From Octopus sinensis (taxonomy: Eukaryota), in the NCBI RefSeq assembly GCF_006345805.1, contig NC_043010.1, positions 64,418,001 through 64,482,000 of the forward strand: a stretch of 64,000 bases of DNA. The letters are read 5' to 3'. Below, piece after piece: positions 25,483 to 55,615 of this stretch. The position numbers and the translations under genes are program-made. Position 1 is the first letter of the stretch. Every line of letters starts with the position of its first letter. The notes beneath the pieces were generated by a model. It was not told the DNA's origin and did not search any database. It saw only the letters and a list, made by a program, of their open reading frames with translations.

Positions 25483-25570
25483 ACGTTACCAAAAGGCCTA
25501 ATCCACCCTACTAAAGCGGCTAGTAAGACAGTGAACACAGGAAAAAACCGCGACAAATCTATACTTCCAT
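25483..25570 (+). CDS. Exon: PTP motif 1 region
   Basis: 88 bp, phase 0-1; TLPKGLIHPTKAASKTVNTGKNRDKSILP. Confidence 0.88.
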
Positions 25571-25789
25571 GTGAGATTTTCTAATTATACATTTATAAAA
25601 AAGACAATAACGATATGAAGGTTATTACGTTCCACAATTTTAAATTTCTATCCAGGAGAGTTAGAATTGACCAGCAGTGTAAAACAGGCACATATATACT
25701 TCCTATCCTAAGCAAGGCAATGTCAGATAAAGAATAGATGCAGAAAAGATTACTTACAGTGATTTTTGTGGCGAGGTGGGGATAGATGT

Positions 25790-28130
25790 TCCGTTCCCAT
25801 GATTATATATGAATGTTTCCACAAGCAGTCGTTTATACAGTCTTTTGTTGATATTTCTCCCGAAAGATTCCACTACTTCGGGATATTTAGTTTTTATGGA
25901 ACTGTATGTGTTTTGTGGTGTTAGGATGAATTTTATGCGTGTTCGTATGTTTTTGTTGGTGTGCTAAAATCGCTGTTTGAGGTCTGTACAGCTTCATATG
26001 TGTTCAATCAGTTCTTCATTGTTCATGTTTATTGCTGTGTAATTAAGGATATTTGAATATTGCTGGTGTTGAGATGTGCTTTCTGAGAGTTATGTGACTG
26101 AACTGGGTTGAGTTTCTGATTGTGGTGTCTGTGATGATTGTAATGGGGATGTTGTTGTTGACGGAACTGGTATGGTTGCTGTTGTGGTTGGCATTTGTGT
26201 ATTTGTTCGCAAAGCGTCTCTCTCCTCTGATCATATCTACCAGTTTTTTTGTTGGTGTCGGAGTGTTTTTATTTCTTTTTCTTGTTTTACACCTACCGAC
26301 TGAATATGTCTGATCCGAACACGGAAGGGGCATATCTGAAAGAGATTTTTACTATTGTTCTGTTGATAATAAAGTTCTTGTTTTAGGGGATTCTAATGCT
26401 GTTGTTTATGCTGCTGTGTGATATGTGGAAGCCATAAATGTTGGTGAGTTATCTGTTCTGTTTGCTGCAGTTGCTTCCACTGTTGTTTCTTGTTGTTGCT
26501 GCTGCTACTGCTGTTGTAGTCGCTGTTGCAGTTGCGGTTGATTTTACAGTTGTAGTGGTTCCCCGCCCCTGCTTGTGCTGTTGATATTGTAGTTGCGGAG
26601 GTGTCTGCAAATTTGGGGGACTCCCTTCTCTCTTTTGTTGTAGGCAAAAGGTTTTTAGAAGATTCTTGCACTAATGATGGTCACATTTGCATCAAGCGAC
26701 TTGAGATCGTTGAGCAAGTGACCTACTTCCAAACCGAAACCAGACTCCGGACATTTGCACATCTTACTATAAGTGTAGCCACTTAGGTTAAAATAAAGAA
26801 AATTAAGTTATTTATCTTCGTCATCGTGGACGACTGTTGAAACAGCCTTTACTTTTGACTGAAGGTTGTGGAAAGAGTTTTCTATGTCCTGGGAAAATTT
26901 CTGTTTTAAATTCAGATACATTTAAATTAACATTCTGTTTGAAGGAATTTTCAGGGGGTGTTCAGCAAAGCATTCCTCACTTATCAGAATGTTTTTGTTG
27001 TTAGTCTCTTCTCCAATCAACGCAATGTTGCTCTTTTGAACAACAGTGGAGTTGATGAAAGAAGTACATACACAAGCTGGTGACTGTTGGTCATTTTGTT
27101 GATCGGGTGTTTCTTTTTTTTTCCGCAATTTTTAATTCGTTTGTGCTTGTGAAAGTCTTTAAAAGCTGGTTTCCTTGCTGTGATGAAGGTGCTGATGTTG
27201 ATGTTTTGGTACTTGATATTGTGACGGATGTACTATATTGCCATCATGTCTTAAGGCTTTCAATTTGGGCCGGCCTCTATTTATATGAATTTGAGTCTTC
27301 CTCTTATCCCTGACAAAGGCCTTATGGTGAGATTTCAACGGATCTTCATCCCCAACGAGGTCTTTGCTTTTGTGAGGCCTCAGTTAGAGGAAAGACGCAG
27401 TTGTGAGGTAGTTTTAGTATTCTCACCTATTGTTTAAGGAAGGAATTTTTCTTGAGGAGTTGGTAGCGGTGGCAGAGTAAATCGTGCCTTCTCCACTGCG
27501 GAGCAAAAGGCTTCAAGGTGGTTAGTATTTCCTCAAACGAAATATTTGCGAAAAAAAAAAGGGAATCCGACTTATTTCTTCTGGAGGAACTAATATCTGG
27601 AATTCCATAAGAATTCTCCTCCTGTTGAATTGTTGGGTGGATTTCATCACAATATCTCCTTGCTCCTCCAAAATGACAGATTCTTGCCGGATCTCGATGA
27701 ACCAGCCCGTTCTTGACGTGAATTCAAGTCAACCTTTTACCCATATGATGAGGAATCATAAAGGTCTGGGACATGCGAGTAATTTTTATCATTGTTCTGC
27801 CTTCTTTCTTGCTGCTGCACATAGCTCTTGCCGTCCCATATTGTTTTCCTTTATATGTGTAGCACTGAGGATCACATAGTTTGGAGGAATTTTTTCTGTT
27901 TCTGCCAGAGTAGGAAATTTAAGTTTTCTCTCCTTGTGAGAAACGCTTTTATACAGAATAGTTTTTCATTCAGAGTTAGTTATTTACATCTTCATTGAGG
28001 GATAAATCCCCTGGTTTTAAAATATTATTTTTGTGTTGGGGGGATTTACCTTTCAGATCTTGCACCGGTCCACTGGCAAACATCTCTCAAGAAAAGATAG
28101 AGTGGATCTTTTCTTTTTGATGGACGGAAT
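25790..28130 (-). mobile_element. Composite degenerate Tx1-like LINE fragments (ORF1 and start of ORF2)
   Basis: ORF2 start-like VRCANVRSLVSVWK..LLNDLKSL near 26700-26800, homologous to 29500-29600; T/Q/N-rich ORF1-like tails. Confidence 0.55.
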
Positions 28131-28168
28131 TTTCTAGTTAACTAAAAAATTTGAAACTTCGTATACTG

Positions 28169-29169
28169 GTAGAATGTGTCAAAAGAAAACATTATTGTAA
28201 ACAAAATTGAAAACAAAATTGTAATTCGTAACTAACGTAGTTTAATTCTTCGAATTTTAACCAATGAAATCCCAGCATCTTCGAATTTTAACCAATGAAA
28301 TCCGAGCATTTGAGCTCAAATCATTTGCTGCATTATCGATATTGATAAAGAAACGTAGCAGACGCATGCCGCACACACACACACATATTCAGATACATAC
28401 ACACGTACACTTGCACACACACACTCTCTGTCACTCTCTCTCTCTCTCAAACACATGCATATACATTTGCACAAGCACATAGCAATTAATATATAAGCGT
28501 ACTCACACATACAAACGGAGATATACATACACACACATACAAACGGAGATATACATACACACACATACGCACACAAGCATACATACACGTTCGTGAGTTG
28601 GCCCTTGCCGCAACAAATTTACACAAAAGGTAAATAAACCAGAAGGGGGGGTCAATGTTTCATCGTTTCGGGGTCAATAAATTAAGTACCAATTACGCAC
28701 TGGTGTCGAGGATTTTTTCCCCATTTTATATCACAGCATCCGACAAGCTGGGACATCCTTTTATGAAAAAATATTTCGCAATTTTTTAGACCGCTTTAGG
28801 CATATTATTGTTTTGTTTTTGTTGTTTCTGGCCCTTCAAAACCATGGAAGAAGCCTTTTCGGTAAAAAAAAAATAAAGAAAATATTCAAAATACATCGTT
28901 AATATTTTTATTGGGCGACGAAATTCATCGATTTAAGAGATATAGCTGTTATTTCTAGCACATGTAGAAGACAGACGACAGAAGACAGAAGAGAGAAAGG
29001 ATGAATAAGATGTGTGTGTGTGTGAGTTTTTAGACGCAGCAAATGGTTTGAGCTCGAATGCTAGGATTTCATTGGTTAAAATTCGTAGAATTAAACTATG
29101 TTAAAGTTACGAATTACAATTTTGTTTTCAATTTTGTTTACAATAATGTTTTCTTTTGACACATTTTAC
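28169..29169. mobile_element. Foldback/MITE-like element with about 135-bp inverted arms
   Basis: 28169-28331 is the reverse complement of 29036-29169. Confidence 0.75.
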
Positions 29170-29170
29170 A

Positions 29171-30870
29171 TTTAAAACTCTATTCCAATACCCCACTAAT
29201 GCTAAAGAGCGGGACGCTCTTTGAAAAGATTCCAGGTGTCTAAAGAAATATAGCCGTCCTACCCCTGTCGAGGCACAGACGGCAACTAGCCTAAAAATAT
29301 GTCCTTCGCTGTCTCTCACGTCTAAGACCACCGACTTACTTTCCGGATTCAGGAAGATCGTCCGTATTATAAAACCCAGATTTTTCCGAACCACCTCCCA
29401 CTCCCGGACGACTTGGAGATGCGTACACCTCAGAGTCATGGAAAATAGGTCGGAAGTCCCGTGAGTTGGAAATTCTGGTTTCACTAATAGCCACTACGTC
29501 AACATTCAGTTACCTGGGGTCGTTGAGCAGGTGACCTGCTTCCAAGGCGACCTCAGGCCACGTACCTTCACGCTGTCGATTTTGTACACGACCATATTGT
29601 CGGAAAAAGAGAAGAAAAGAAATGGAAAACTTACTTGGTTTTGTTTGGAGTGGTAGATTGCCCGTCCCACCCGTTGGTATGGGGGTGTTTCCAACAGCAA
29701 ATCACCCACAGCTCTCTTGGTGATGTTCTGGCGAAAAGTGTGTGTGTGTATATTCTTTGTGTTGTTTGAATGATTTGTATGTTTGCAGGTACGGAGAATC
29801 TGAGTGTGGTAAAATCTTTTGGTGTAATATTTGTGCATGTTATATATGTCATTAATTCATCGTTGTTTGAATTTTGTGTTCGTTGTTGTTGTTGCTGTGG
29901 TGGTGGTGGTTGTGATTGTTGTTGCATGTGTGAAATGGTTTGTGTTTCCGGTGTTAGAGGTGGTGGTGTCGATGCAGTGTTTGTTTTGGGCGTGTTTGTT
30001 TTTGCTGTTTTGATTTTTTCTTCTCCACTTCTTGTGTGGATGAGGATTGTTGTGGTAGTTGTTTGTCCATATGTTTATTTTTCCTTCTCTCTCTTATGTT
30101 TTTTTTTTTTTTGTTTTTAACTGCTAGTCTTCATCGCGGTCCGTCTCTCCAGCTATGATGTCCACTCGCTCTGCATCGGGAAGTGGAATATCTTCCGGCG
30201 ATGAGAAGTGTTTGAGTGAATTCGATGTCGGTATGGTTATTGGTGTTAGTGTTGGTGGTGCTATGGTTGAATCTACTGCTGGTGATGGTGCTGCTGCTGT
30301 TGTCGTTGGAGTTCTGGTGGCCGATGTTGGTGTAGAGAGCGAAGGTGCCCGTCTCTCTTTTTCGTTTATCTTAGGGCAGTCAATTTTTAAATGCTTGGGT
30401 GAAAAGCAAAAGTAGCCTTTTGGTTTTCTTCCATCAACCCTGAACGGAATTATGCTACCTCTAGGAGGAAGGATCTAGCCTGGGAGAGATCCACATTTTA
30501 TTGTGTTGTTTGAATGAGGAGTTCTACGGCCATCCCAGAGCAGTCTTCCTTTATGGTATGATAGGCTTCGAGGATTTTCGAGTTTTCCTCAATATCTATC
30601 AGCACTGCCGCAATTAGCCAAGGAATGGCTATTTCTGGCACACCGGCTGGATTATAATTTTTGAGGGGATTCAGAGAGTGATGTTTGGCTTCTTTCTCTG
30701 TGTAGAATTGAACGTCCACCATTCCATAGGTCTTTCCTTACTGTATATATTCCTTTAGATTCCAGACTGAACCTAAAGCTTGTTATATTTGAGCCTCTGC
30801 GGCTCTTTCCACCCTCCTTGACTTTAACCCGATTGTACGGTATGTCACTGTGCGACATATCGAAGCATGG
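29171..30870 (-). mobile_element. Tx1-like LINE 5' half (ORF1 with zinc knuckle, APE endonuclease start)
   Basis: VPFRVDGRKPKGYFCFSPKHLKIDCP; SVVLDVRDSEGHIFRLVAVCA...LALVGYWN. Confidence 0.75.
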
Positions 30871-30879
30871 ATTGTCTCA

Positions 30880-31162
30880 GGTGGGGTATTCCACAAATAT
30901 GTGTATGTGTGTGTGTACAAGAAAACTATGTAAAACTTTACATATGCATATAAAGTAAAACAAAATCGGAAAAATAATCCAGAATCCTTGTCCGGTGCCG
31001 AATCGACCCCAAAATTTAATGAGACCGTCCCATTTGCAAAGCCAAATATCCCTGCAGTTCGTTTCGGATCCATCCCGCGGTTCTTGAGATATCTTGTCCA
31101 CGGACAAACAAACAAACAAACGAACACGAATGAAAACAATACCTCTGCCTTCGCTAAGGCGG

Positions 31163-31168
<6 letters not shown>
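30880..31168 (+). mobile_element. Non-autonomous Helentron/DINE-like element (tentative)
   Basis: (ACAA)n tract then gaaaacaatacctctgccttcgctaaggcggtggtaat terminal hairpin. Confidence 0.45.
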
Positions 31169-31199
<31 letters not shown>

Positions 31200-31208
31200 G
31201 GTAATATT

Positions 31209-31732
31209 CCCTGATGCAGTACAAGGCAGTGGCTTTCATGGCTTCTCATGTACATTGTTTTGTTTTTGTATAAAAGATGGGTTACAGATAATATTCTGCT
31301 CAATACGACAGATTTGCTTGTTAGTTGCTTGACCTTAACCAGTTGAGCATGTCCCTTAATGACTGACAATATGTGCATCCCTGATTGTGAGCAGAAGTAG
31401 TGGGGGAGTATCATAGCCATGTGTTGAGAGGAATTCTTTGATGTTTGGATAATTCACCTCTGGAAACATGGGTGTTTCGTCCAACATCCTCAAACAACCC
31501 CTTTTCAAGGACTTTTTGAGCGGGATGGGTCACTCGACCTGATGAAAATTCTAAATGGGCCCCATCTACAAGGTCATGCACTGTTAATCTTGATATGAGA
31601 TCACCATGTTGCGCACATATGGTTATGATGCATGTACCTGGTGTACCCTTATTAGACGGGTAGTCATTATGGGTATACTGGGCTTCGTATATTTTACCCC
31701 AGTGTCACTTTGATGGCATGCACTGCTCCCTC
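31209..31732 (+). mobile_element. AAT-associated SINE-like element, copy E (full length)
   Basis: (AAT)n on both sides; same 5' and 3' ends as copy B. Confidence 0.88.
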
Positions 31733-31763
<31 letters not shown>

Positions 31764-31766
<3 letters not shown>

Positions 31767-34331
31767 GAACAGCTAAAACAAAATATCTTCGCCAAAGAAC
31801 AAAAAATCCGCATGTATGAAAAATGCCAACGTTTCTTTGAACAAACGTTCAACTCCAACCCCAAAAGAGTCTACCAAGAACTTGACAAAAGCAAAACAGA
31901 GAACAATGCAGCACTAACAACAGAAGAAGTGGAATAGTGTCTGAAAGAAATGTTGTCAGTGAAGGAACAACCTCAGAAAAGAACTATCAAAACAACGAAC
32001 TCAGCACCTGAACAACTCTGAACTCCAGTAACAACTGAAAAGGACACCCAGGCACTGCAAAAACTAAGCAACGGGAAGACACCTGGGCACAATAAGACAC
32101 CCAACTTCTGGTTAAAATACCTGACTGAAATACATAAATAGCTGGCTGAGAAATTTAATGAAATACTATCAGAGCCGGCATGGCTCACAGATGGGAAAAC
32201 TATCCTAATTCCCAAATTCACTGAAACAGCAAACCCAAAAATTACAGACCGGTAACTTATCTCCATACAGTTTACAAAGCCTTTATTCCAATAACGTTGC
32301 AGAAAATGAGTAAGCATCTGGAAGAAAACAACCCATTTCCTGGAGAGCAGAAGGAATGCTGCAAGGATTCATACGGCTGTAAAGATCAGCTACCGATCAA
32401 TAAAGCCATAACTGAAGACAGTCGCCGAAAGACAAAGGGTATGGCCTGGATCGATTACCGATAGGCTTTTGATAGTATTTCTCACAGATGGATCCTACAA
32501 ACAAGCCATGAACAAGGTACCACCAATATGAAGAAGGTAACACCAATAATCATAAAATATATAAAACATTTCATGAATAAATGGCAGACAGTGCTAGAGA
32601 TCCAGACAAATGAGGGACTCATAAAACCAAATCTATCCCCATTAGAAGAGAAATATTCCAGAGAGACACTCTCTCCACTCCTTTTCTGCTTGGCACTGAC
32701 ACCTTTATCTGATATGCTAAAAAAACTGGATGTGGATACAACGGTTACGGCAAAACAATTAGCCACCTCTTATATATAGATGATCTAAAACTATACACTA
32801 CAAATGATAAACACCTGGAAACATTACTGCAGATAGCACATTGATTTACCAAAGAAATAAACATGAAATTTGGCTTAGAAAAATGTTCCAAAGCAAACGT
32901 AAAAAGAAGAATGCTAGTCAAGAGTAGCAACATCACACTGGATAAAGCAAATAAAATAAAAGAATTATGCCAAAACCAGACATACAAATACTTAGGAATC
33001 AATGAACAAGATACGATACAAATGAAAGAGAAGATAAGAAAAGAATACTATAGATGAGTTAGATTAATACTGAAAACAGAGCTCAATGTGAAAAACAAGA
33101 TAATAGGTATCAACACTCTAGCCATCCCTGTTATAGGTTACAGCTACAATATCCTTAACTGGACTCTAAACGAACTTATCAAAATATAAGGAGAACAAGA
33201 AAAACAATGACAGGATTTAGGATGCACCAACCAAAATCTGACATGAAAGTTTATATATACAATGTGTGGAAGGTGGTAGAGGCCTTATACTGCTAGAAAG
33301 CTATTACAAAATAACCACCAGGGGACTACAAAAATACCTACTTCAGAAACAAGGAAAACTAGTACAAATAGCCTCAAAAGATGAACATTACAAAAAGCTG
33401 TTTTCAGTCTTTAAGGAAGCTAACAGATACAAAAAAGAAGTCCCTGTACCTAATAACAATGAAGAAAAAGAAGAAACAGCTGAAATCCAAACTAAAACTG
33501 AATCAGCAATGGATCATGATAAAACGGTGTCAAGAAAAGCCCCTTCATGCAAATACTGGGTCAAAACTAAATGCGAAAGAAATAGACAAAGCAAAATCCC
33601 AACAATGGCTGAGAGGCTCAGCCCAAATTGAAGGATTTTTAATTGCAGCGGAAGACCAAAGCCTCCCCATAAGAAATTACCAAAAACATATAATGAAAAA
33701 AAAAAGGACACAAGTGACTGCAGAATATGTGGAGATGGATACGAAGCAATAAACCATATTGTCTCTGGCTGCCCAGTCCTGGCTAAGAAGGAATATGCCA
33801 ACACTAAGGAATAACAACAGAAAAGATGGTATAGGCACACGCCAGAAAAGGTCACAGAAAATGAGAAAGCAGCCATACTATGGGATATGCCAATATACAC
33901 AGATAGAGAAATTAAGGCCAATAGGCCGGATATAGTTATTAGAAATCATCAAGAAAAATGCTTTCTAATCGATGTATCAATACCAACATATGATAACGTT
34001 TCTCTAAAAGAAATGAAGAAACTTTCAAAATACAAAGACCTGGAAATAGAGGTAACTCGAATATGGAGTCTAAAAATGCAAACAATTCCTCTCATAGTAA
34101 GCGCATTAGGTATTACAATAATATTCAGGCAAATACATAACAAAACTACCATAACTAACAAGTATATATAACATACAAAAAATAGCATTACTAGGCACCT
34201 CACACATCCTACGTAAAACAATTTCAATACAGTAAAAATAAGAGCATCACAATAAACCATAGCACAACCCAAGGCACACAGAGCTGTGCTCGGTAGTGCA
34301 GTGAAAGCACGTGATAAAACAAGACTACTGA
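31764..34331 (+). mobile_element. R4/Dong-clade retrotransposon, 5'-truncated, multiply frameshifted
   Basis: RT remnants (LSPLLFCLAL, YIDDLKLY, MKFGLEKC), RLE (ANRPDIVIR..KYKDLEIE); same 3' UTR as 10024-10120; AAT/GAT tail. Confidence 0.92.
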
Positions 34332-34369
34332 ATAATGATGATGATGATAATAATAATGGAGAAAAGGCT

Positions 34370-34720
34370 TATGCTTGAGTGTCTCTGATGAATTAGACGG
34401 GTGATGCGGTCAAAATGTAATGGAAGGAAAAAAGTTTCAAGCAATCAATACATGGGCAACTGCATTCGTGAAGTATGAGATAATTATCCTCAATGAGAGG
34501 AAAGAGAAGTTACAGAAGCTACATCGAAAATAGAGGAATCTACTCACAATGCACGGAGCAATCCACAGCAAGAACAATATTGACAGGCTGTATGTAACCA
34601 GACACAAAGATGAGGGCTAATAAGCTATGAATGTTATATATTCTTAGAAGAGAATAGCTTAGAGTGTTGTATCAACAGTGCCATAAAATCTTTCCGTGTT
34701 CAGGGGTAATATCTGGTATA
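34370..34720 (+). mobile_element. R4/Dong-like fragment, older subfamily
   Basis: QAINTWA, LLTMHGAIHSKNNIDRLYV remnants; resembles 63290-64000. Confidence 0.6.
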
Positions 34721-36055
34721 GCCAAGACAGAAACTTGCGTGGAGGCAGAGAACTACAAAGAAGTACGGAAGTCGAAAGTAAATGGAATGGAAACCGATAT
34801 AGGGTCAGTTTGCGAGAGAGAGAGAGAGAGAGAGAGTGAGAGAGAGAGAAAGAGGAGTACGGATACAGATGGCGATGAAAGATGGCTCTACAATCTTACG
34901 CAAGTTTTATTTGTGGCAGAATCTGAAAATCTGCCATTATATCTTTTAAGTTCTGAAGAAAATGATTGGAGACTAACTGTTCCGTTAATTAATCGATTAA
35001 TTGGTAAATCGATTTATTGATTGATTATACATGCAAGCCATCGTTTAGCGTGGAAACAATTCCTTAAGGCACTCGAAACGTTCGTAAGTGGATATAGTTA
35101 CGTAATATCAAACTTATTCATTCTTGCTACACACACACAGTATCTTGATATTTCACACAGGTCTTGCGAGATTATTAGCTTAGAACTCCATATACGTATG
35201 CTTCAGAACGAGGTGTTAGACGAGTATAGAGTAGTAATAAGAACATGAAATAACAAAGGAATATAATGATTATGTTATGTACTTCATTAACTTACAACTG
35301 TTTCTGCTATAGATGCAATAAACTCATAGTTGAATACCTGAATAACACTTTATAGCTTCGTTGGAGTTTTGAATAGGAAGTGCAATTTATTTGGGAAAAT
35401 AATATTTGTACATATATTTAGAGAAAGCCATTTCTATATATACTTTTGTTTCTGATGTTTTGATTTTCATATTAAAGGAGAGGTAAATTTAGATACGTTG
35501 CAGGTGTGTTTTGACTAAAATATTTCTGATAATTTTAGGGTGGTTAGATATTTTGCTTATATATTGAAGGTTTTCCTTTTGTTTGTGGTATGGAAAAGTA
35601 GTGAATTTTAAAAACTTGCAATGAAGTACAAGATATAACTGAAAGATGACTGAGTTCTAAACAACGTGAAGCCACAAAAATGATCAAATGAGAAATGAAA
35701 TAAACTCTTCCTTTAAGTAATTATAAATTAAAATAACAATTATTACAATGGTGAATATCTTAACTTTCTTAGATTTTGAGTCAATTGTAGAAGACAAAAT
35801 CACTGAGAAGATCACAGCTCTCTGGATAAAGACTTTCACATCCTTATCAACAATTTATTTATTAACAATAACTAAATGAATTACACTTAGTATGTATGTG
35901 TGTGTGTGTATATGTGTGTGCCTTTAATCAAAAAGCACTCCCAGAATATAACAACATCAGTTTCAACACACATCCTCATTTCAATAATCATGCAAAAGAA
36001 ATACAAACCTACATGCACATATACAAGATTATATTTATTCATTCTTTCTCCTATT

Positions 36056-36099
<44 letters not shown>

Positions 36100-37115: not shown

Positions 37116-40100
37116 TGTATGGCCATTGCACATGGCTTAACTGTTATTGGTGCTGTGATCGAATGTGACTTCTTAGCACAGCTAAAGATCTACAATGTCT
37201 TGGACAGAATTGGCAGCTAAAACCTTCACTGGCAATAGCCGGCTGTAATTGTAATTGGGCTTCATGTACCTTTGCATGTCATTTAAGTCCTCCCATTGAA
37301 TCACACTTCCTTCTTCATGCCTGACAGAAATGATTAGTATGGTGTGTAACACCACCACCAGCGTACGGTCTTGCACAGACACTGCATGTCAGAGTCATAG
37401 GAGGACCCTTGTCTGGAAGTGCAACAGCGATGCCCTTCCTGACATCCCTCCTTACTTTCTCATGCGCAACTCAAGATTTCTCAAACGAAGCTGTCCCTCT
37501 TGCACAACCCTCTCCACATACTACAGTCAAAAGCTATGCCCTCCTATGTGTCAGGAGAGATGCTAGCATCTTTCAATGAAGCCTTTGGCATGTCTTTATA
37601 CCTCTTTTTTGGTTTATGTTGAGGTCGTTCTCCTTTAGTTAACTCTCTATAAAAGCGTTGTTTTGGCATTCTTGAATCTTTCATCCTGACTAGATGACCA
37701 CTACATCAGAGCCTTTGCTTCAACACAAGAACTTCTATACTTTCACACCGAGAGCTTTTCAATATCTCAAGATCACTGATATACATCTGATGGAAACGCT
37801 CCAGCTGTTTAAGGTGGTATCGATATGTGACCCGGGTTTCGCAGGCATAAAGAAGAGCAGAGAGCACACATGCCTTGTACACCTATATCGTTGTCTTCCT
37901 ACATATGTCTCACCGACTCCAGAGGCGCCTTTCTAGCCTTCCGAAAGCATTACTTGCTTTCCTAATTCTGTATGGAATTTAACTATACAAATTGCTATAT
38001 CTATAAACAGTGTTTCCCAGGTAGACAAACTGATCCACTACACCAAGTCATTTACCATACACATAGATATTTGGTTCACTATACTGCTTACCGGAGGCAG
38101 GCTGGTACATGAGAATAGTTTTCTTGAAACTGACTGTCAATCCTAAGCAGCGCAAGCATCGGAGAATGCATTCAAAATGTCTGTGTGAGCTACAACATCA
38201 CCATCATCAGCATACAAACGGTCTCTTATGATAGTGGTAAATACCTTTGTTTTTGCAGCAAAGCGCCTGATATTAAATATGCTGCCAGGGGTTCGATAAT
38301 GGATGTAAACACCATATCTGCAGTTTTTGAACGCAATACTGAAAACCATCAAATAATATATGGCAAATAGGATCGGTGCCAGAATATCCCCGTTTCACTC
38401 CATTTTGTATTGAGATAGGCTCCGACATTTTACCTCCAACATTAATCTTACCCTTCATGTCTTCATGAAAAGATCTTACCAAAGCAAGGAACTTTTTAGG
38501 ACAACCAAGTTTCTGGAGGATTTTCCACAGTGCATTTCTATTAACGGTATCAAAGGCCTTTGTCAGATCGACAAAAAACTGATATAAATCCAGACCCTGT
38601 TCCACACACTTCTCCTGAAGCTGTCTAGCTGAGTAGATCACCTCAGCAGTGCCGTGTCCCACACGAAAGCCAGATTGACTTTCTGGAAGAACACAATCTG
38701 CAACGTGCTTCAGCAGATGATCCAGAAGTACCCTGCATAAAATCTTTCCTACGACAGAAAGCAATGATATTCCCCTATAGTTACCACAATCATTCCTATT
38801 GCCCTTTTCCTAATATCAGACCACCATTACTGTATCTCTCCAGTCCTCAGGTACAGATTCACTAGCCCATATCCTGCCAAACAAGGAGTGAAGTTGCTGC
38901 AGAAGTTTCCCACCGCCATGCAGTAACTCCGCCTGTATGCCATCCATACCCGGAGATCTCTCATTATTTATCCTTGAGACAGCTACAGTAACTTCTTCAG
39001 CATTGGTGATTCCGCGAGAGCCACCTTCACAGGTAACTCAGGGATGAGATTGAGAATATCCTCACTAACTACAGACTGCTGATTCAAAAGTTCATCAAAG
39101 TGTTCTCACCACCTTCGCAGAATCCCTTGTGAATCATGGAGTTCTTTAACATCTCTGCTTCGAAGTGGTGTCATCAGAGAAGTCGATCCATAGACTTTTC
39201 GCAAGAGACCATAAAACTTTATGTTGTTGGAATCTGACGCCGCTTGTATCTCATCAGCCTTCTTACTCCACCACGTATCCCTCATTTGAGAGAGCCTCTG
39301 CCTCACATGTAATTTCACATCTTTGAGTTCCCCATGCAACACACTCTCTCCTGTGGCTTTGCTGACAAACAGCGTGACAAAGTACATCTTTTATCAGTCA
39401 ATAAATCATCTATATGCTCATCATTTTCTTTAAACTAATCTTGATGCGCTCTTTGCATCAATCCCAGAACTTTCCTGCCTATATCATAAACTGGCTTTTA
39501 AAGGGTCGGCCAATCCTCACCAATATCTGCTACATTCATTTCCTCTCGTAAAGTTCTCTTCACACTATTACGCCTAAGACTAGTAGCATTCAGTCTTTTA
39601 GACAGAGTAATACCTGCAGCACGGATTTTACCTTTTGTGATTAATTTCACTTTTGCACGTACCAGACTGTGGTCAGTCCAACACTCAGCCCTACGAAGAA
39701 TACGAACACACTGCACATTCGTCTGTCATGCACCCTAACAAGGATGTAATCCAGAATATGCTATTCTTTAGATGCAGGTTGCATCCATGTAGTCATAAAC
39801 TTATTCTTTTGTTGAAACATGGTATTGGTAACACACTGACGCAGATCCTCGCACATCTGCAGCTGAAGCATACCATTACTATAACACTTTCCCACCCCAT
39901 GCTTTCCAGTTACAGTCTATGTATTAAAATCCCTACCCACTCTAGCATTAAAGTCACCCAGTACAATGACTTTGTCTGCTCGAAGGATATTTTTTATAAT
40001 GCCCTTCAAAGCATGGCAAAAAGAAACTTTTTGTCATCAATAGAGCAGATAGTTGGAGCATACACACTCACCAAGGTCACATAATTTCCTTTAATCAAAG

Positions 40101-42001: not shown

Positions 42002-42075
42002 ATGATCATTCTCGCATAATTCTGCATCCAGATGAGATATCATATTCAGATTACATTAATGCATCCTATTTAAAC
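42002..42075 (+). CDS. Exon: PTP motifs 2-3
   Basis: tttcag / gtaagt, phase 1-0; YDHSRIILHPDEISYSDYINASYLN. Confidence 0.95.
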
Positions 42076-44242
42076 GTAAGTATTACAAAGAATATATTTA
42101 GAGTACACTTCAATGTAATTTATATGCAGTTTAGATCGTTAAACATTATATTCCATACGTTTATCTTTATCTTATATATTAATATTATAAAATACACATA
42201 GCATATTATTATAAGACTTTTAAAAGGTTCGTGCAATACGTCTAACATATGTGTGAAATACATATACGTTATCTCTACATTACATACACTATATGCAACA
42301 TGTTTCTTTAGATTTTTATACGGCATGACAGCATATAAGATGTACCATACGTATAGTGTACATGCAACATATAACGTATATATGTCCTAAAACATTTTTG
42401 TGTCATATTTGTATACATGACCCATCTTTGGAATATATGGACATATATAATATATGCTTGCAATATATTATATATTATTTACCTATATTCTAATTCATTA
42501 AGCAAAATACACACATATGAGCAAGTATTATGTAATATAAGCCAACGAGAGTACACCCACGTAGTTCTTTGAAATAAAATCCAAACATCTTAAAAATGAA
42601 AATGGATACTGTGGTCCTAGATGTCTTTCAAATATCAAGATGTGTTCATAGGTCAGAACAATCAAGTCAGAGCTGGAGTTAAACAACGTTTGCCACGTCA
42701 TTTTGCAACATATCTGTAGAAAGCGTAGTGTATCTTGTGTAGGAAATATTTCATCAGCTCTTTAGTTTGCTTTTAGCCTTCATGGCCAAATCCACGCTGA
42801 TACATCACTCTATATGTATGTGTTCTGAATGTATGCACAAACATACATGCATACATACACACATACATGCATGCATACATACATAAATACATGCATAAAC
42901 ACATACATACATACGTGCACACATGCAAACATAACACATACATACATAAATACATACATACATACATACATACATACATACATACATACATACATACATA
43001 CACACGCAAGCATATGCGTGTGACTTGCTGTAATAGAAATATTTTGATAATTGGCGTCTTAGATATAAAATATTTGTATCTATATTCTGTATGTACTACA
43101 TAAAATTGAAGTGGAGCTTCTAAGTGGCTGCTCGACCTGACCTTCTAGCAATAGTAGCCAAACACCCTTGTAAACTCACTTATCAAGTAAAAGAAGAAGA
43201 AAAGGGTGCAGTGGATAGTGCAGTTTCATATATCCTTAAAACAGGATACTCATCTCTAACACGACCTTCATAACAAACTTTGTTGATCAAAGTTAACCAG
43301 GGGTTAAACAACAACAACAACAACAACATCAACAACAAAAATAACATTGTCATGTATGTAGTTGATGCATGTACCACATCTTCGGTAACAACGATAGAAA
43401 CGTTAGGGTCTCACATATGTAATATAATGTGTAATATGCAATATACACATTATATAACGTGATACAAAATCACATTCGTAATATAAAAATCTTCAATTAT
43501 ATGAGTTTATTCTTGTAATTAGTCGACAAAGGTTTCATCTTGGCCGGATTTAACATTTAGTAAGAGCTCCTGCCTGAAAATTTCTTTGATAATCTCTATT
43601 CTTCGTATTTTTTCTCTGGTAGTAAATTGACATTTGAATGTGGAAGATTCAATTTTGTAACTTTTAAACAAAATATTAGCATCTCATGGTTTTACTCAGG
43701 TAAATTCAATATTTCTATCGTTCACTCCGGCTGATGAATATTCCAAGAAATTTTCTATGATTAACTGGTTTAAAGAAACATGACATGTGTCTTGGTAATA
43801 AGAACAAATCACGGTAAACTACAGTCGTAAGTCGCGAGCAGATATTAATACCCCCTTGGTCCTTCCACTTTTGACCAAGCGGAAACTCCAGAATTTAACT
43901 GAGGCGAGAGAGAGGAGAGAGAGAGAGAGACGCAGAGAGGAAGAGGTAAGAAGCGAAAGAGATAGAGAGAGAGAGAAAGAGAGAGAGAGAGAGGGAGAGA
44001 GAGAGAGAGAAAATGGGGCTGCATCAGAACACGGCTGGTACTAATTACATCTAAGTAAAGTAGACTAACATGAAACGAAGTGAATTGCTCAAGAGTACAT
44101 CGCGACGCCTAATTGTCTATGTATATTAGGTATTTGTATTTAATATGTAGAAACTGCTTGGAAGTATTTTCACTTTAGCTATTTTGTTGACGCTATATGT
44201 TCTTTCTGTCACTTGTTTGCTTAATCTGTTTCTCTGTTACAG

Positions 44243-44267
44243 AATCGGAAGTACATAATAACTCAAG
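44243..44267 (+). CDS. Microexon: PTP motif 4
   Basis: ctctgttacag / gtaagt, 25 bp, phase 0-1; NRKYIITQ(G). Confidence 0.88.
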
Positions 44268-45240: not shown

Positions 45241-45349
45241 TATTTCATTCAAAATTGGTGAAATTATACGTTCCCCACTGCCCCAAGCACTCTCCTCTAT
45301 CCACAGCATCTGATGTTATTTCTTTTTGGTATCTAATCCATGATTTTTT

Positions 45350-45648: not shown

Positions 45649-46598
45649 TATACATATTTACCGAGCGTCAAGCTAATAGGTTACTTTTGCACGTCCTGTT
45701 CGTTAATTTTATTCGTTTACTTGAATGATAATTTATTTGAATTGACTATATATATATATACATGTGTGTGTTTGTGTGTGTGTGCGTATGTGTGCGTGTG
45801 AGAGAGAGAAACTGATAAACTAATCATTTTACCATAAAAAATTGCAGTATATTTTGATTAAAACAGCAGCAACTTTTAGTTCGCCTGCATTTATTATCAG
45901 CTTCTGTTACACATTCCCACTCCATTAGCTGTTTTAGCTTTCTTTTCCAGCGTAAGAGGCTTGTCAATAAATTATCTTTTCAACTTCTACACTTCGGAAC
46001 TTGAAATTGTAAAGATAACTAACCTAAACCACCTTAAACCCGTTTTCGGGGGAAAAAAAAAGGTCCATAGTGAACATGACGTAAGTTAAATTAGTTTAAA
46101 CATACAAAAACTAACTTCCTACCAATTCTATTTAGTGAAAATAGTGGTCAACGTACAAACAAACTTAGCTTTTTATAAGTACAATGATATAATGAGTGCA
46201 CAAACAAAAGAAAGTAGGTCCCAGTATATTTGTTTAAAGTTTTTATGAGCACTCCGATTTGATATGGTGAATTCCTAGTACACCCATGAAATTTTAAGCA
46301 ATGTAAAACTAAGTGACAGTTTTATTAAATGTGTGTGTATATGTGTATGTGTGTGTGCGCATGCGCGTTTGTGCATGTGTGTGCATATGTATGCATATAT
46401 GTATGTATATGTGTGTGTGTATGTAGTTATATATGTATGCGTCTGTCTGTCTAGCTATGTATCTATCTATCTATTGAAAAGTTTAGTGTTTCCGGTCGTG
46501 AGACAATTATTTATCGTATACTAATAAATCTTATCCAAGTTGTAGATCCGCCTGATGAATTGGTTGATCTCATAGATTTTATGTTTCTCTTTTTACAG

Positions 46599-46695
46599 GG
46601 CCTCTAAAAGAAACCATTGTAGATTTTTGGAGAATGATATGGCAACAAGAATGTACAACGATTATCATGTTTCAGAATATGAAGAAAAAGGAAAG
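46599..46695 (+). CDS. Exon: PTP motifs 5-6, carries an apparent 1-nt deletion
   Basis: GPLKETIVDFWRMIWQQECTTIIMF then frame shifts to EYEEKGK; 97 bp where 98 is needed for the phase 0 junction. Confidence 0.9.
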
Positions 46696-48137: not shown

Positions 48138-48250
48138 TACGAAGGGATGCTGAAAAGTTTATGGCTTTGGGTAAAAGAAAATACAAGCGGTTCAACATAT
48201 TCTCCTCTCATATTGATACACTTATTGTAGCATTCTTCAGTTTTTCTAAT
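48138..48250 (+). mobile_element. Mariner-type TIR fragment (a related one at 53616-53690)
   Basis: tacgaagggatgctgaaaagtt / gcgagggtgggctgaaaagttc. Confidence 0.6.
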
Positions 48251-49714: not shown

Positions 49715-49837
49715 ATAAAAAATATTCAGTACTGGCCAAATGTCACAGAAACAGTGGAGTATGGTTTAATGAAAATTAAAACCATTAGTATAGCTACAAA
49801 CGCAGTCTACGAAAAGAGGAAATTCCACATCTTCAAG
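49715..49837 (+). CDS. Exon: PTP motif 7
   Basis: ttgtag / gtaatg, phase 0-0; IKNIQYWPNVTETVEYGLMKIKTISIATNAVYEKRKFHIFK. Confidence 0.9.
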
Positions 49838-50519
49838 GTAATGTGCTAACCTAATAAATTCGATTTCACTTAGCAGAAAATATTATATGGGAAAACCTCG
49901 CGTAAATAAGCAAGACATCTACGTAGTAGTGGATGTGTGCGTGTGTGCGTATGGGGGTGGATGGATGAGAGTATGTATGTATGTGTGTGTGTGTGTGTGT
50001 ATGTGCGCGCGTGAGAGAGAGAGAGAGAGCTAGTGAAGGAAATAAAAGGAGAGTGTAACGTCTGTTGTGGTGTTTATCACCAAGTATCATCACCAGTTGT
50101 AACGTATTAGAATAAGAAATAGTAAACAATAGCACGACTGACGAAAACGATTAGACCGTAGTCTCAGGTTCAGGACTGAAGCTACTCCCTGTGATATTTT
50201 CCAAGCTCAATTTCTGCCCCAACAAAAATTTCAAAATCACCATTTCAAGACAACAAAATAAATTTGAATACGAAGTTTTACATTTCACAGCCAAAAAATT
50301 GTAGTTTTTATAATGTAATTATTTATAGCCATATGAACTGGGCCAGTAAAAGTTAACAGCCTTGACTTTGGATGGTGTACCACCGATCGATATGTAGAAT
50401 GAATGGGATAGAAATAAATTCATTCCAGATGAATCAAGTGGAATGAGTGTCTGGTCTCTACCCACTACGATCCTCCCAGGAATAGTGGAGGGAGGAGATG
50501 GATATATACATGTACATAC

Positions 50520-50580
<61 letters not shown>

Positions 50581-51506
50581 TTTATATATTGTGTGTGTGT
50601 GTGTGTGAATGTACGAGTTTTGGGTGTTTATTTTTTATTTACGTATAAAAATGCAAAGTACTTAATACAGGTCTCTTAGAATTTTAGACAGTCTGTTACA
50701 ATTTTGCACTGTAAACGGAAATATAAACTGATATCAGAAGGATTCATCTGCAGGTTTGATATAGTCTATATTCCAGACCAACCGATGTGAACGGATGATC
50801 AATGTTTGCACGCAAAACACATATTTTGTATACATACATATAAGGTGGTTGTTTACTTCTTATACAAAGTCTGACCACCTCTTTTACTTACACCTTAGAT
50901 TTATCATGGCGTCTAATGTGGCTTTTTAAACCAGTCAATATTTTAAAAAGACACCCACATATATTACATATCTGCTTTAGACTATCAAGACCTGCAGTTA
51001 AGTTCTGATCTTAAAATGTCTTTTGAGGCCACTGTTAGATTTGCAGACTGTGTGACATATGCACAGACAGATTGATAGAGTAATTGGTGGAGGTTTGTTT
51101 TTCAAGGGTCTGTAAATGAGACTTGAGCCCAGCAAAAGAAAGGAATGGTCTTCCACATATTGTGCACACAAAAAAGGTAGTTCGAATTTATTTTCTCGTT
51201 GATCGCAGCATTTTTCTTTAAATTTCTTTTAAGTTTTGGATGGGTCATCTTGAATTCTTCAAAAGCCTTCACTCCACTCTATACTTTCATTCATTCATAC
51301 ATACATACATACATACATACATACATACATACAAACAAAAATACCCTGTGTTGGGGTAGAAGTTCCAACGAAAGAGCTTCGAATCTGTCTTGATACAACA
51401 CAAATGATATTATATACAGTTATTATACTATGAACCTTCCATAGTAGCTTTCTCTCCGTAACTCGCAAAGCCATTCGGGTTTGTTTATAAAGATATTATT
51501 TATGTA

Positions 51507-51552
<46 letters not shown>

Positions 51553-51609
51553 GTATAGGTATGTATATATATGTGTATGTATGTTATATATATATAAGAT
51601 GTACCCAGT

Positions 51610-52280
51610 GTAAGCTATGGACACATAAGAGGTGCAGCAATGTCAAAGGTAGGCTAACTGGGAAGATAGTTTTTGTGTGGCAGATGCTCGGGAGACTTAA
51701 CCTCCGAAAATCTGCAGAAAACAACTTCCGTCACTTTCTAGGGGGAGAAACTAGAAGTAGTTGATAGCTTCGGTTATCTAGGTGACCAAGTCAGTAGTGG
51801 GGTGGGTGCGCTGAAAGCGTAACTGCTAGAATAAGGATAGCCTGGGCAAAGTTTAGGGAGCTCTTACCTCTGCTGGTGACTAAAGGCCTCTCGCTCAGAG
51901 TAAAAGGCAGACTGTTGATGCATGTGTACGAACAGCCATGCTACATGGCAGTGAAACATGGGCCGTGACTGCTGAGGACATGCGTAAGCTCGTGAGAAAT
52001 GAAGCCAGTATGCTCCGATGGATGTGTAATGTCAGTGTACATACTCGACAGAGCGTTAGTACCTTGAGAGAAATGTTGTACCTAAGAAGCATCAGTGGCA
52101 TGTAAAAAGCACCAACTACACTCACGGAGTGGTTGGCGTTAGGAAGGGCATCCAGCTGTAGAAACATTGCCAGATAAGACTGGAGCCTGGTGCAGCCTTC
52201 TGGCTTCCCAGATCCCAGGTTGAACCATCCAACCCATGCTAGCATGGAGAACGGACGTTAACCGATGATGATGATGATGA
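51610..52280 (+). mobile_element. RTE-clade LINE 3' fragment with internal deletion
   Basis: LEVVDSFGYLGDQVS..IRIAWAKFRELLPLL..MLHGSETW; 3' end ggacgttaaccgat(GAT)n. Confidence 0.85.
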
Positions 52281-52282
52281 TG

Positions 52283-52328
<46 letters not shown>

Positions 52329-52480
52329 ATTTGAATGTCTTTGTGAAAATTACTTTTAAAAAAAATTATAAAATCTTTTATCTGGATGTTACCTTTTTGA
52401 AACAAGCTTTATTCCTAGTGCGTGTGCACACTTTCGATTAATCTTCTCAAAAATGTGTATATTTATATGTATGTATGTAT

Positions 52481-53034
52481 GTCAGGTCACTTTCGAATGC
52501 TACTGGTAACATGTAACCCAGTACAACCTGTAGCATGGTCGGGTCGTCGGCGACTAAACCGGCAACCCCACCAAGCTTGCTTGGTGAGGAGGGTGTTTAT
52601 TGGACACCCTGCAGGATGAAAAACAAAACCCGTCAATGGGCGGAGGAACTCTTGAGGGTCAACAGCCATCCAATAAATGTCTTAAGGCTGTATCATGTGC
52701 GGGGACATAGAAATAATCGGACTGAATACCCGATCGGGCGGTTAAACCATTGGGAGTGAAGGACTCCTAGCCTTTGTTAGGGCATCCTTCTAGGAGAAGG
52801 TAACTCAGGTAACTGGGATAACTCCGACATAAAACCTGCGGCTCAGTGGTTACCGATGATGTTGACTTGTTCTTCTTTTCGGATTATGGCTGCTGTTGCT
52901 TAGTGAGTGGGATTGACTCAGGGCACAGCCTTTCCTCACTTTAAAAAAAATCTTCTTGCACAGGCATTGCACAATAACAACATTGATTAAGCTTTGTGCA
53001 ATGGCCATACTTGATAACGAGGGGGCAGCCACCA
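52481..53034 (+). mobile_element. Bipartite non-autonomous RTE derivative (5' UTR plus 3' end)
   Basis: 52481-52980 matches the RTE 5' UTR at 40590-41424; 52987-53010 matches the RTE 3' end at 37116-37140. Confidence 0.8.
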
Positions 53035-53724
53035 TGTATGTATGTATGTACGTATGTATGTACGTACATATGTATGTACGTACGTATGTATGTACGTATG
53101 TATGTATGTATGTATACATACATATATTTATAAGTTTTAAGCAGAATAGAGTGTGGTGGTGAAAAAGATGTTCAGAGAAGATGAAAGAACAGAGAAACGA
53201 GGAATGTTTAGAGAGGAAACACCTATCCAGCCGCCAAAAATTTCGCGGGAATGTAATTATTTACCTACCAAATATTACAATATACCACAGCATTGAACTC
53301 AATTTATTTATTGCTTTATGGGGATAATTAGTAATTTTGGAAGGTGGCCTATTTTTATGGAAGCAATCTGTTTTGTTAAGGGGTTTATTTAGAAAGTTGA
53401 TATAATGTTTATTTATATTGGTACTACTCGATATATTCTTTGGCGTTTGTTTTAGTATTTCTTAAATGACCAGTTTTAGTTTCGACTGCGGATATCCAGT
53501 TGCGACTGTATATCGTAACTTGCTTGAAAACCCTGTGTACCAAATAACCTTAATTATAATAATCTTAACTATGGTATCGAGTACCCTTACTTCTGATAGT
53601 CAATACAAAATAGAATATGCGAGGGTGGGCTGAAAAGTTCATAGGCTGACTATAAAGGAGCGATACTAGAGCTGTGAAATTTTGCATCCATCCATCCGTC
53701 CGTCTGTCTATCTTTCTATATCTA

Positions 53725-53761
<37 letters not shown>

Positions 53762-53767
53762 TTCTAT

Positions 53768-53812
<45 letters not shown>

Positions 53813-54404
53813 GGATTTAATAAAAACAACAAACGGAAAATTTGAAAAAGCCACAGCACACGGAAAATTCGTAGCTAATTTCTTACCAGTCAACGTTCAA
53901 GAGATCATAATAGTTTGGTGCCGTTATCTTCTTGGAAGCATCAGTTGCCAAAAGCCACTGAGAATAGCTAATTGACGTATAGGACAATGACAAAAACAAA
54001 CAAAGCTGTGCGGGTACCAGACAGATGAATATAGGTAACGCAAAGGAAAACGAAAATGTCCTGAAGGACTGGAACACGAGAAGGGCAGTACGAACGATGA
54101 AATAATCAAACCTTATAGGAAAAAGATGAAGAAACATGAAGAAGCATGATCGACCTGGTCGCCAGCAAAGCAAAACAAAATGACGCAGGCTTAGATGGTC
54201 ACGTGGTAGTGGGAGGAGAAAGAAAAAGAGTCGTGGAGAGCAAAGGAACAGAAGAAACAGAGGAGAATAATAGAGAGGGAAAGAGAGAAAGATCGAGAGA
54301 GGAATATAAGAGAGAGAAAGAGAAAAGGAGTGATTTGGACATTGCAGAAAATATATTCCAAGGTTATTTTTACAAATGTGTAAAACTGCATGCACACACA
54401 CACA

Positions 54405-54458
<54 letters not shown>

Positions 54459-54466
54459 ACACACAC

Positions 54467-54513
<47 letters not shown>

Positions 54514-55264
54514 CGGGGTGAAAGGATGATTTCTAACTCAAATTCCAAGCATGATTTCGCATATATTATACTCTTGACATAGAACGTATAAGCAAAGCAA
54601 ACGACAGTAGCTGGATTTGAACATCTACTGTAGCCAAACATTCTTTGAAAAGACACATATTTTTCTATTCATACGAGTTGGTGCAGGATTTGTAAGATGT
54701 ATTTTCTTTAGATTATAACTCGTAAGAGTTGATTGACTAGTTCGTGTAGAATTATTTAGGTCCGATAATGCATAATTTTCCTATATTGTGTAACATGCAA
54801 ACTTTTATTGCTCATAAAGTTGAAGTTAATAATATAGTGTTTCTGTATTGTGTAAAATGTAGCATTTTATATTTTTACAGCAACATGCAGTGCTTTCTAC
54901 ATCTTTATGGCTCTTGTATCATTACTTAGGTTCTGGAATGTATGTTTTCTATCTTCTAACATGCTGCATGTTATAGATCATATAGCATGCATTATTTAGA
55001 AAAAAGACCCTGACGAAATCTTAGTGCCAAAATGCATAAGGGAAAATAAAAAGAAGGGGAAGGATGGAAGAAGCAGAGCAAAAGAATTAAATAAGAGGTA
55101 AAAAGAATGAGCGAAAAAGAATGAATAAGGGAGAGAGAGACTGAGAAAGAGAGAAACAAGGATAGAGAGAGTAATAAAGAGGAAGAGAGAGTGAAAGAAA
55201 ACTAGGTATAGAAAAAGGTTAAAGAGTGAATGAAGTCAATTGAAAGAGTTTGAGAGAATGAAGT

Positions 55265-55301
<37 letters not shown>

Positions 55302-55457
55302 GTGTGTGTGTGAACGTGTTTGAGCGTGTGTGCATGTGTGTATGTGAGCGCGCGCGTGTGTGAGAGAGAGTGAGTGAGTGAGGACGTTTGAGTAATATGT
55401 AAGTAAACTATATTTATCAAAATTACTGAAATTTGGAAAGTTACATTTACATTGCAG

Positions 55458-55615
55458 AAAGAACTGGTGAAAACTGAAGGTTGGGAAATTAATCATTTCA
55501 CTTTCTTGAAATGGCCAGAACGAGGTGTACCTATTGATCCAGAACACATTCTAGATTTTCGAAATGCTGTTACAAACATTTTCAATAAGAAACTACCAAT
55601 TGTTGTGCAAAGCAG
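55458..55615 (+). CDS. Exon: PTP WPD loop and start of P-loop, catalytic residues substituted
   Basis: ttgcag / gtcag, phase 0-2; ...HFTFLKWPERGVPIDPEHILDFRNAV...LPIVVQS(S/R). Confidence 0.93.

Follow-up and report, generated by a model that had tools for sequence, protein, structure and literature searches.

The 64,000 nucleotides (nt) of Octopus sinensis contig NC_043010.1 analysed here (positions 64,418,001 to 64,482,000 of the forward strand, called the window below) hold the 5' two-thirds of an Octopus receptor-type protein tyrosine phosphatase (PTP) gene, in whose first PTP domain (D1) the His-Cys of the catalytic P-loop is replaced by Gln-Ser. An earlier note on this DNA, made from the letters alone, had described D1 as a pseudophosphatase with a natural Cys-to-Ser change, and had overlooked that the gene is receptor-type and larger than annotated. 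All of the motifs that it listed were found on the forward strand at the places it gave, with YIITQ/GP split by the junction of exons 44243-44267 and 46599-46695. Six GT-AG exons between 25483 and 55615 (+) splice to 188 amino acids (aa) that match the Pfam profile PF00102 (Y_phosphatase) over positions 1-176 of 234 with E=4.3e-44, which excludes chance resemblance. Coordinates, strand, splice sites and Pfam match thus bear out the motif assignments, and by profile and fold D1 is a classical PTP domain. The donor just past the Ser codon (AAGCAG/gtcagt) is the one used by the O. bimaculoides gene, where the next exon opens SNGVGRSG; given the shared donor and the orthologue's next exon, Gln-Ser truly stands in for His-Cys.

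Gene structure and the orthologous locus

Upstream of D1 the window carries exons for an EGF-like segment of the ectodomain, a membrane span and a giant repeat region (Table 1). The EGF-like exon is syntenic with an O. bimaculoides EGF exon and matches ectodomain repeats of paralogues, and the transmembrane exon joins in frame to it upstream and to the giant exon (acceptor 18248) downstream, reading …VYCC/ISMVSKKRKAEKEK. Since the giant exon starts just after the membrane span, it encodes the intracellular juxtamembrane region. The 3.9-kb open reading frame (ORF) at 18255-22148 is built of tandem units of 45 nt (16.6 copies, 94% matches) and 72 nt (26.5 copies), and the repeats that it encodes, rich in Lys, Glu and Pro (KAKQKPEKKEKEKTD; ARKPESKEEREKAWKAESKGRPET), separate the membrane span from D1. 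ORF length is not in itself evidence of coding here, since stops are also lacking from several further frames of the array, on either strand. The 3' 730 nt of the giant exon align in frame to residues 4-249 of P0121, the O. bimaculoides protein introduced below, and this alignment to the P0121 N-terminus identifies the giant ORF as an exon of the receptor-PTP gene. No Pfam match was found in the giant repeat exon, and paralogues aligned over the repeat region gave merely short matching stretches. The most economical model is a single protein with, in order, ectodomain, membrane span, charged repeat region of about 1,200 aa, D1 and D2; the EGF and transmembrane exons in the window, together with the second PTP domain (D2) of the orthologue, supply the ectodomain, single span and D1-D2 pair of a receptor-type tandem PTP.

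A search with the spliced 188 aa returned distant PTPs with at most 48% identity, among matches of 329 aa or shorter. D1 exon 6 alone (52 aa), searched exhaustively, gave one close relative at E=5e-28, namely P0121, an 821-aa protein entered at NCBI as 'receptor-type tyrosine-protein phosphatase T [Octopus bimaculoides]'; this existing database entry is a prediction that has not been characterised, and the name given to it automatically is misleading. Exons of the window and of the P0121 locus share about 95% DNA identity and the introns are colinear, with about 92% identity in their aligned parts, which establishes the window as the orthologous locus. P0121 is reproduced exactly by translating the 17 O. 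bimaculoides exons, each of which has GT-AG sites, and their 2,466-nt frame is therefore intact without annotation 'repair'; against PF00102 the protein scores E=2.3e-87 over positions 1-234 of 234, with two domains. The annotated start of P0121 abuts an assembly gap (a run of Ns) within the repeat array, at an internal Met, and upstream on the same strand lies a 691-aa gene model with F5/8 type C domains, the last exon of which looks spurious. The O. bimaculoides annotation appears to split one receptor gene in two at the gap (CM046614.1, 1-10000 of the fetched locus). No same-species protein was found with a 1,437-aa query that included the repeat exon, the match lengths covered falling short of the full-length model (about 2,550 aa), and a literature search found no paper linking pseudophosphatases with octopus.

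The remainder of the P-loop is encoded by an exon outside the window; in O. bimaculoides that exon follows 1.66 kb further downstream. No PTP exon was found in 55616-64000 by tblastn with 120 homologues, by a custom PTP hidden Markov model (HMM) run on all open segments, or by synteny, which ends at about 55907, in agreement with the earlier placement of the rest of the P-loop and any D2 outside the window. A weak in-frame read-through likeness just past the exon 6 donor (E=1.8) was set aside, as it coincides in part with a retrotransposon fragment.

Table 1. Exons of the receptor-type PTP gene in the window, with the D1 motifs that they encode
Feature	Position	Strand	Sequence	Remarks
EGF-like ectodomain exon	857-990	+	…CAPGTYGYDCTGVCNCRDNATCYIMNGNCSNGCEITYTGADCQT	GT-AG, phase 1 at both ends; tblastn with Octopus receptor-PTP paralogues, E ~1e-7
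Transmembrane exon	5923-5998	+	TYIFELIGTGILVCLVLIAVCVYC	Donor TG/gtaagt, phase 2; hydrophobic segment conserved in O. bimaculoides
Giant Lys/Glu/Pro-rich repeat exon	18248-21870	+	…CC/ISMVSKKRKAEKEK	About 1,200 codons, 3.6 kb; opens right past the membrane span
Exon before D1	24304-24434	+	LPKDHVRFEDEITSSYRPLSDPPIMKYIKQQLQLSEPFLDDFL	Aligns to P0121 residues 249-293
D1 exon 1	25483-25570	+	…KNRDKSILP(Y)	
Motif	25543-25554	+	KNRD	KNRY motif, Tyr to Asp
D1 exon 2	42002-42075	+	(Y)DHSRIILHPDEISYSDYINASYLN	
Motif	42004-42015	+	DHSR	
Motif	42049-42066	+	DYINAS	
D1 exon 3	44243-44267	+	NRKYIITQ(G)	25-nt micro-exon, identical to O. bimaculoides
D1 exon 4	46599-46695	+	GPLKETIVDFWRMIWQQECTTIIMF, then frameshift	From DNA alignment and spliced translation
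Motif	46622-46642	+	DFWRMIW	
D1 exon 5	49715-49837	+	IKNIQYWPNVTETVEYGLMKIKTISIATNAVYEKRKFHIFK	As assembled, out of frame with exon 4
Motif	49718-49738	+	KNIQYWP	KC to KN
D1 exon 6	55458-55615	+	KELVKTEGWEINHFTFLKWPERGVPIDPEHILDFRNAVTNIFNKKLPIVVQS + AG/	Donor cuts the next Ser codon, likewise in the orthologue
Motif	55512-55532	+	WPERGVP	WPE itself 55512-55520
Motif	55596-55613	+	PIVVQS	CAA AGC at 55608-55613; Gln 55608-55610, Ser 55611-55613
Intron after D1 exon 6	55616-64000	+		Enlarged by retrotransposon fragments; reverse-transcriptase-like ORFs 60680-61258, 61575-63086

The window is AT-rich (GC about 37%) and its introns are long and repeat-filled. Intron lengths differ between the two species because of transposon insertions, retrotransposons having brought the window introns to as much as three times the O. 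bimaculoides length. Retrotransposon fragments with reverse-transcriptase or zf-RVT matches lie at 10124-11717 (-), 38273-38764 (-), 55700-57150, 60680-63086 (+) and 33098-34854; one element family occurs at 33098-34854 and 56029-57147 and also in an O. bimaculoides intron. The last intron further holds a 63-nt tandem repeat at 59768-60090 (5.2 copies, 95% matches, both strands open), and long (AT)n, (ACAT)n and (CA)n microsatellites occupy 17702-17913, 42837-43002 and 54393-54514.

Catalytic residues, fold and paralogues

The Tyr of the PTP motif KNRY shapes the deep pocket for phosphotyrosine, on whose ring it stacks; the water used for hydrolysis is activated by the Q-loop. Catalysis needs this Tyr, the WPD Asp, the P-loop Cys and the Q-loop (PMC7320164). 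In the window the nucleophilic Cys of the HCX5R P-loop is gone, Gln-Ser (CAA AGC) standing in its place, and WPE and KNRD have taken the place of the WPD acid and the KNRY Tyr. P0121 shares KNRD, KNIQYWP and WPERGVP; its D1 P-loop reads VVQSSNGVGRSG (PIVVQSSNGVGRSG), with Ala replaced by Asn, and its Q-loop is degenerate, IIENRSQL as against MVQTxxQY in active PTPs, with Glu for Gln. With Cys, WPD Asp, KNRY Tyr and Q-loop all altered, D1 is catalytically dead. The phosphate-binding Arg of the P-loop is kept in the orthologue's D1 (GVGRSG), the matching exon lying beyond the window, and the orthologue's D2 has the P-loop VHGSDGMKKSG. As proposed here, then, both PTP domains would be catalytically dead while the fold and structural core are kept: D1 through Cys to Ser, His to Gln, WPD Asp to Glu, KNRY Tyr to Asp and (in the orthologue) Q-loop Gln to Glu, and D2 (in the orthologue) through Cys to Gly and P-loop Arg to Lys.

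The substitutions seen in the window are common to the intact O. bimaculoides orthologue and so are not sequencing noise. The description of D1 as the first domain of a tandem PTP in which HC has naturally become QS, WPD has become WPE, KNRY has become KNRD and KC has become KN accordingly holds, and the orthologue, in which HC and WPD would by the earlier note have told against this description, carries QS and WPE. The statement that A-to-I editing is unable to restore Cys from AGC is likewise correct, the genetic code giving GGC (Gly).

It is conceivable, if most improbable, that D1 is still an enzyme of another kind, with Ser as nucleophile or with a non-phosphotyrosine substrate. Such an enzyme would be in keeping with the orthologue's retention of the P-loop Arg and glycines (GVGRSG), and some proteins labelled pseudoenzymes have proved active (PMC10211241). 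But Cys-to-Ser mutants of classical PTPs are inactive, the WPD-to-WPE change greatly lowers activity in several active phosphatases (PMC7320164), and here His, KNRY Tyr and Q-loop Gln are lost too.

AlphaFold2, run on P0121 with a 101-sequence alignment, gave a predicted local distance difference test (pLDDT) above 90 over D1 and D2 and a predicted TM-score (pTM) of 0.72. Residues 1-263 are predicted to be disordered, as is the part of the repeat region that P0121 holds. The best structural matches are the tandem D1-D2 regions of PTPsigma, LAR and RPTPalpha (target-normalised TM-score 0.82-0.84); Foldseek gave target-normalised TM-scores of 0.82-0.89 against solved PTPs, and a PDB sequence search agrees with the structural matches. 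Structure prediction, which the earlier note had suggested as a check, therefore returns a confident tandem PTP fold. In the 101-sequence alignment P0121 keeps 33 of the 37 invariant or near-invariant PTP columns, and the four that it has lost are His, Cys, the 'KC' Cys and one Pro (Pro356). Pro356 is lost in O. bimaculoides and kept in the window, and is the sole difference between the two that touches a near-invariant position. Retention of the fold, as measured by these columns, with the catalytic residues gone is the pattern of a pseudophosphatase.

The proposal that D1 was kept for binding, in the manner of C-to-S mutants that trap substrate, is weakened by the replacement of the stacking Tyr by Asp, of the Q-loop Gln by Glu and of the P-loop Ala by Asn. 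With Asp for the stacking Tyr, Asn in the P-loop, and Glu in each of the WPD and Q-loops, the pocket would be shallower and more acidic, and judging from these residues phosphotyrosine binding or classical substrate trapping seems doubtful; binding through other surfaces or through the charged repeat region is at least as likely. By analogy with human PTPRU, the most likely role would be that of a non-catalytic scaffold or decoy receptor, in which PTP-domain surfaces and the charged repeat region, instead of a phosphotyrosine trap of the classical kind, bind the partners.

From its nearest paralogues in O. vulgaris, O. sinensis and O. bimaculoides (P0134-P0137 and P0139) this protein has diverged by about 60%; they have canonical or near-canonical KNRY, as well as KCxQYWP, WPDH and VVHCSAGVGRTG (VHCSAGVGRTG). 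Two further paralogues, P0138 (O. sinensis XP_036362485.1) and P0140 (O. vulgaris CAI9728057.1), have KNRF, WPE and PIVVQSKTGAGSTG; they carry PIVVQS and are also without the P-loop Arg (GAGSTG). The O. vulgaris genome also spells this Gln-Ser CAA AGC and has an intron of the same phase after it (OX597822.1; 45001-45018 of the fetched locus). P0138 and P0140 thus resemble P0121 in PIVVQS with its CAA AGC codons, in the intron position, in WPE and in a degenerate D2, but differ in overall sequence (27-31% identity), in the loss of the P-loop Arg, in having KNRF and not KNRD, and in their location, which is on another chromosome-scale record. Degeneracy of D2 is common to all these Octopus paralogues: Lys or Glu has replaced the P-loop Arg, and the Cys has often gone.

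Neighbour joining on D1 brings the Octopus receptors together in a single clade (94.5% bootstrap), within which P0121 groups with P0138 and P0140 (83% bootstrap). From codons, intron and tree, Gln-Ser probably has a single origin that predates a duplication, the products of which now share only about 40% identity in D1; such an origin would imply long retention of the dead state. The dead state is old, being common to O. bimaculoides and probably to the second Octopus paralogue lineage.

Selection analysis of the gene and a frameshift in the window copy

Selection was assessed by comparing two species, the window and O. bimaculoides. The aligned intron sequence (11,713 nt) has 7.6% substitutions and 112 indel events, 85 of them not multiples of three. 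The D1 exons differ at 8 synonymous and 15 non-synonymous positions, giving synonymous (dS) and non-synonymous (dN) divergences of 0.074 and 0.034 and a dN/dS ratio (omega) of 0.47, and non-synonymous sites have changed 0.42 times as fast as introns (Poisson P=2e-4; Fisher P=3e-4). Frame-breaking indels are depleted too: one was observed in 1,442 shared coding nt against 10.5 expected under neutrality (P=3e-4), and the other coding indels are multiples of three. Constraint is more relaxed in the unique part of the repeat exon (omega 0.75), and D1 exon 6 shows 2 non-synonymous against 5 synonymous differences. Polarisation with paralogues, mostly uninformative because the differing sites are variable, assigned 2 derived changes to the window lineage and 4 to O. 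bimaculoides. Together these figures would fit a protein under moderate purifying selection from which the catalytic residues have been specifically released. In the dN/dS check, which the earlier note had suggested against paralogues and which was made here against the orthologue, omega is not significantly below 1 by itself (P=0.08); the slower change of non-synonymous sites relative to the intron (P=2e-4) and the depletion of frameshifts (P=3e-4) speak for constraint.

The single frame-breaking indel lies in D1 exon 4, which has 97 nt (46599-46695) where its O. bimaculoides counterpart has 98. A C is missing at 46673, the window reading TTTCAG and O. bimaculoides TTTCCAG (ATGTTTCAG vs ATGTTTCCAG), and this is the only gap in any of the exon alignments. 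The O. bimaculoides sequence continues …IIMFPEYEEKGK/IKNIQYWP, which fits the family consensus E-x-G-[RK]-x-K-C-x-x-Y-W-P, whereas in the window PEYEEKGK becomes QNMKKKER (…IIMFQNMKKKE) and canonical splicing then runs into AGA TAA, a stop. The one-base deletion puts the exons with KNIQYWP, WPERGVP and PIVVQS out of frame with the upstream exons as assembled. The as-is and shifted readings score equally against the HMM, and the indel is placed by the orthologue DNA only. No splice that restores the frame between exons 4 and 5 was found among all canonical GT-AG combinations, exon skipping and alternative acceptors, and a metagenome scan gave 0 matches to either allele of the site. The window copy therefore has no intact frame as assembled, and the pseudophosphatase description of the earlier note, which overlooked the frameshift, stands for the gene lineage and needs a caveat for this copy, which as assembled is broken upstream of its WPE and QS exons.

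The frameshift is either an assembly error or a very recent loss, the two being about evenly balanced; if real, it is very recent. In the latter event the window species would carry a newly inactivated unitary pseudogene or loss-of-function allele, with the mRNA degraded and the Gln-Ser domain never made, a reading that deserves serious weight though it falls somewhat short of an even chance. The deletion with its TAA stop speaks for it, as do the failure of any canonical alternative splice to mend the frame, the relaxed omega (about 0.5-0.75) and the want, over the range of lengths that the searches covered, of any orthologous protein in the O. vulgaris and O. sinensis annotations. Yet the deletion is the sole disabling change: all 8 intracellular exons of the window keep GT-AG, the original frame has no in-frame stop, the remaining indels are multiples of three, and the window lineage has no excess of derived substitutions. 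A single base missing from a CC pair also resembles an assembly error. A decaying pseudogene would show several lesions, lost splice sites and an omega near 1, and what is found is one frameshift, every GT-AG retained, no stop in the original frame and non-synonymous change slower than the neutral rate. The frameshift in the window copy needs checking before the copy is labelled gene or pseudogene.

A more sweeping alternative makes the entire lineage, in O. bimaculoides too, a relic without function that a receptor-PTP duplication left behind, and puts the open frame of O. bimaculoides down to luck or annotation. A relic would explain why both domains have lost all their catalytic motifs, why omega does not fall significantly below 1 when judged solely by synonymous against non-synonymous differences, and why protein searches saw the gene in Octopus only. 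It is nevertheless very unlikely, for a 2,466-nt frame over 17 exons has stayed intact despite about 60% protein divergence from the nearest paralogues, 33/37 core positions are kept, the pace of change at non-synonymous sites is 0.42 times that of introns (P=3e-4), frame-breaking indels are about ten times fewer than neutrality predicts, and a sister paralogue likewise retains the dead state.

The interpretation preferred here, with reasonable though not high confidence, is that the gene lineage is a retained pseudophosphatase, a claim that does not extend to the intactness of the window copy. Several observations count against it. As assembled, the window transcript ends …NMKKKER*, ahead of the WPE and QS exons, and the protein may not be made at all in the window's genome. 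The D1 omega of 0.47 is not by itself significantly below 1 (binomial P=0.08), and D1 exon 5 has 7 non-synonymous differences against 1 synonymous, clustered in …KIKTISIATNAVYEKRK…, which could be a fast-evolving surface patch or noise. Three protein searches found no orthologous protein outside O. bimaculoides, though O. vulgaris and O. sinensis paralogues surfaced, and the gene may be unannotated or lost in other species. The grouping of the two VVQS lineages could be due to long-branch attraction, and the suggested scaffold or decoy function is pure analogy. A wider proposal, offered tentatively and judged the less probable way of putting things, is that Octopus has a clade of its own of receptor 'phosphatases' with both PTP domains dead, one member of which, with a charged tether of about 1,200 aa, may act as scaffold or decoy against active F5/8C-EGF paralogues and may be in course of loss, or polymorphic, in some Octopus species.

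Comparison with known pseudophosphatases

Pseudophosphatases are an established class, making up about 14% of phosphatases according to one review (PMC8269279), while a receptor PTP with a dead membrane-proximal domain is rarer. Human PTPRU, a receptor PTP of the R2B group, is described as the only human receptor PTP with a pair of pseudophosphatase domains; it binds substrates of its active paralogues and has been proposed as a decoy or scaffold that competes with them (PMC7320164). Like the octopus protein, it is receptor-type with tandem PTP domains that are both inactive, and its D1 has WPE for WPD and an altered phosphotyrosine-recognition loop (PMC7320164). In PTPRU, however, the catalytic Cys is still present, though occluded and redox-sensitive, and the ectodomain is of the MAM-Ig-FN3 type, whereas the octopus protein has replaced Cys by Ser and His by Gln, has its D1 separated from the membrane by about 1,200 aa of charged repeats, and has an ectodomain of EGF-like repeats with F5/8 type C domains, to go by synteny and the paralogues. 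Since the Octopus paralogues form their own clade, the octopus protein is not an orthologue of PTPRU.

A parallel to the P-loop change is MK-STYX (STYXL1), in which His-Cys is naturally Phe-Ser; the protein is inactive yet functions as a binding protein, and back-mutation restores activity (PMC2873733). It shares with the octopus D1 a natural double replacement of the signature His-Cys, with Ser for Cys, but belongs to the DUSP/MKP subfamily, is cytosolic with a single domain, and has Phe in place of His where the octopus protein has Gln. Classical PTP folds conserved without their catalytic residues, as in the octopus D1, are found in receptor-PTP D2 domains and in IA-2/PTPRN, and the tandem D1-D2 geometry of the octopus protein matches that of PTPsigma, LAR and RPTPalpha. 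In receptor PTPs with a dead D2, however, D1 is active, and IA-2 has a single domain, whereas in the octopus protein the membrane-proximal D1 is dead too. The octopus gene would illustrate how lineage-specific PTP expansions diversify in cephalopods. As an independent invertebrate case with an outright Cys-to-Ser change and a giant charged insert, it would offer a useful natural comparison with these proteins for receptor function without catalysis.

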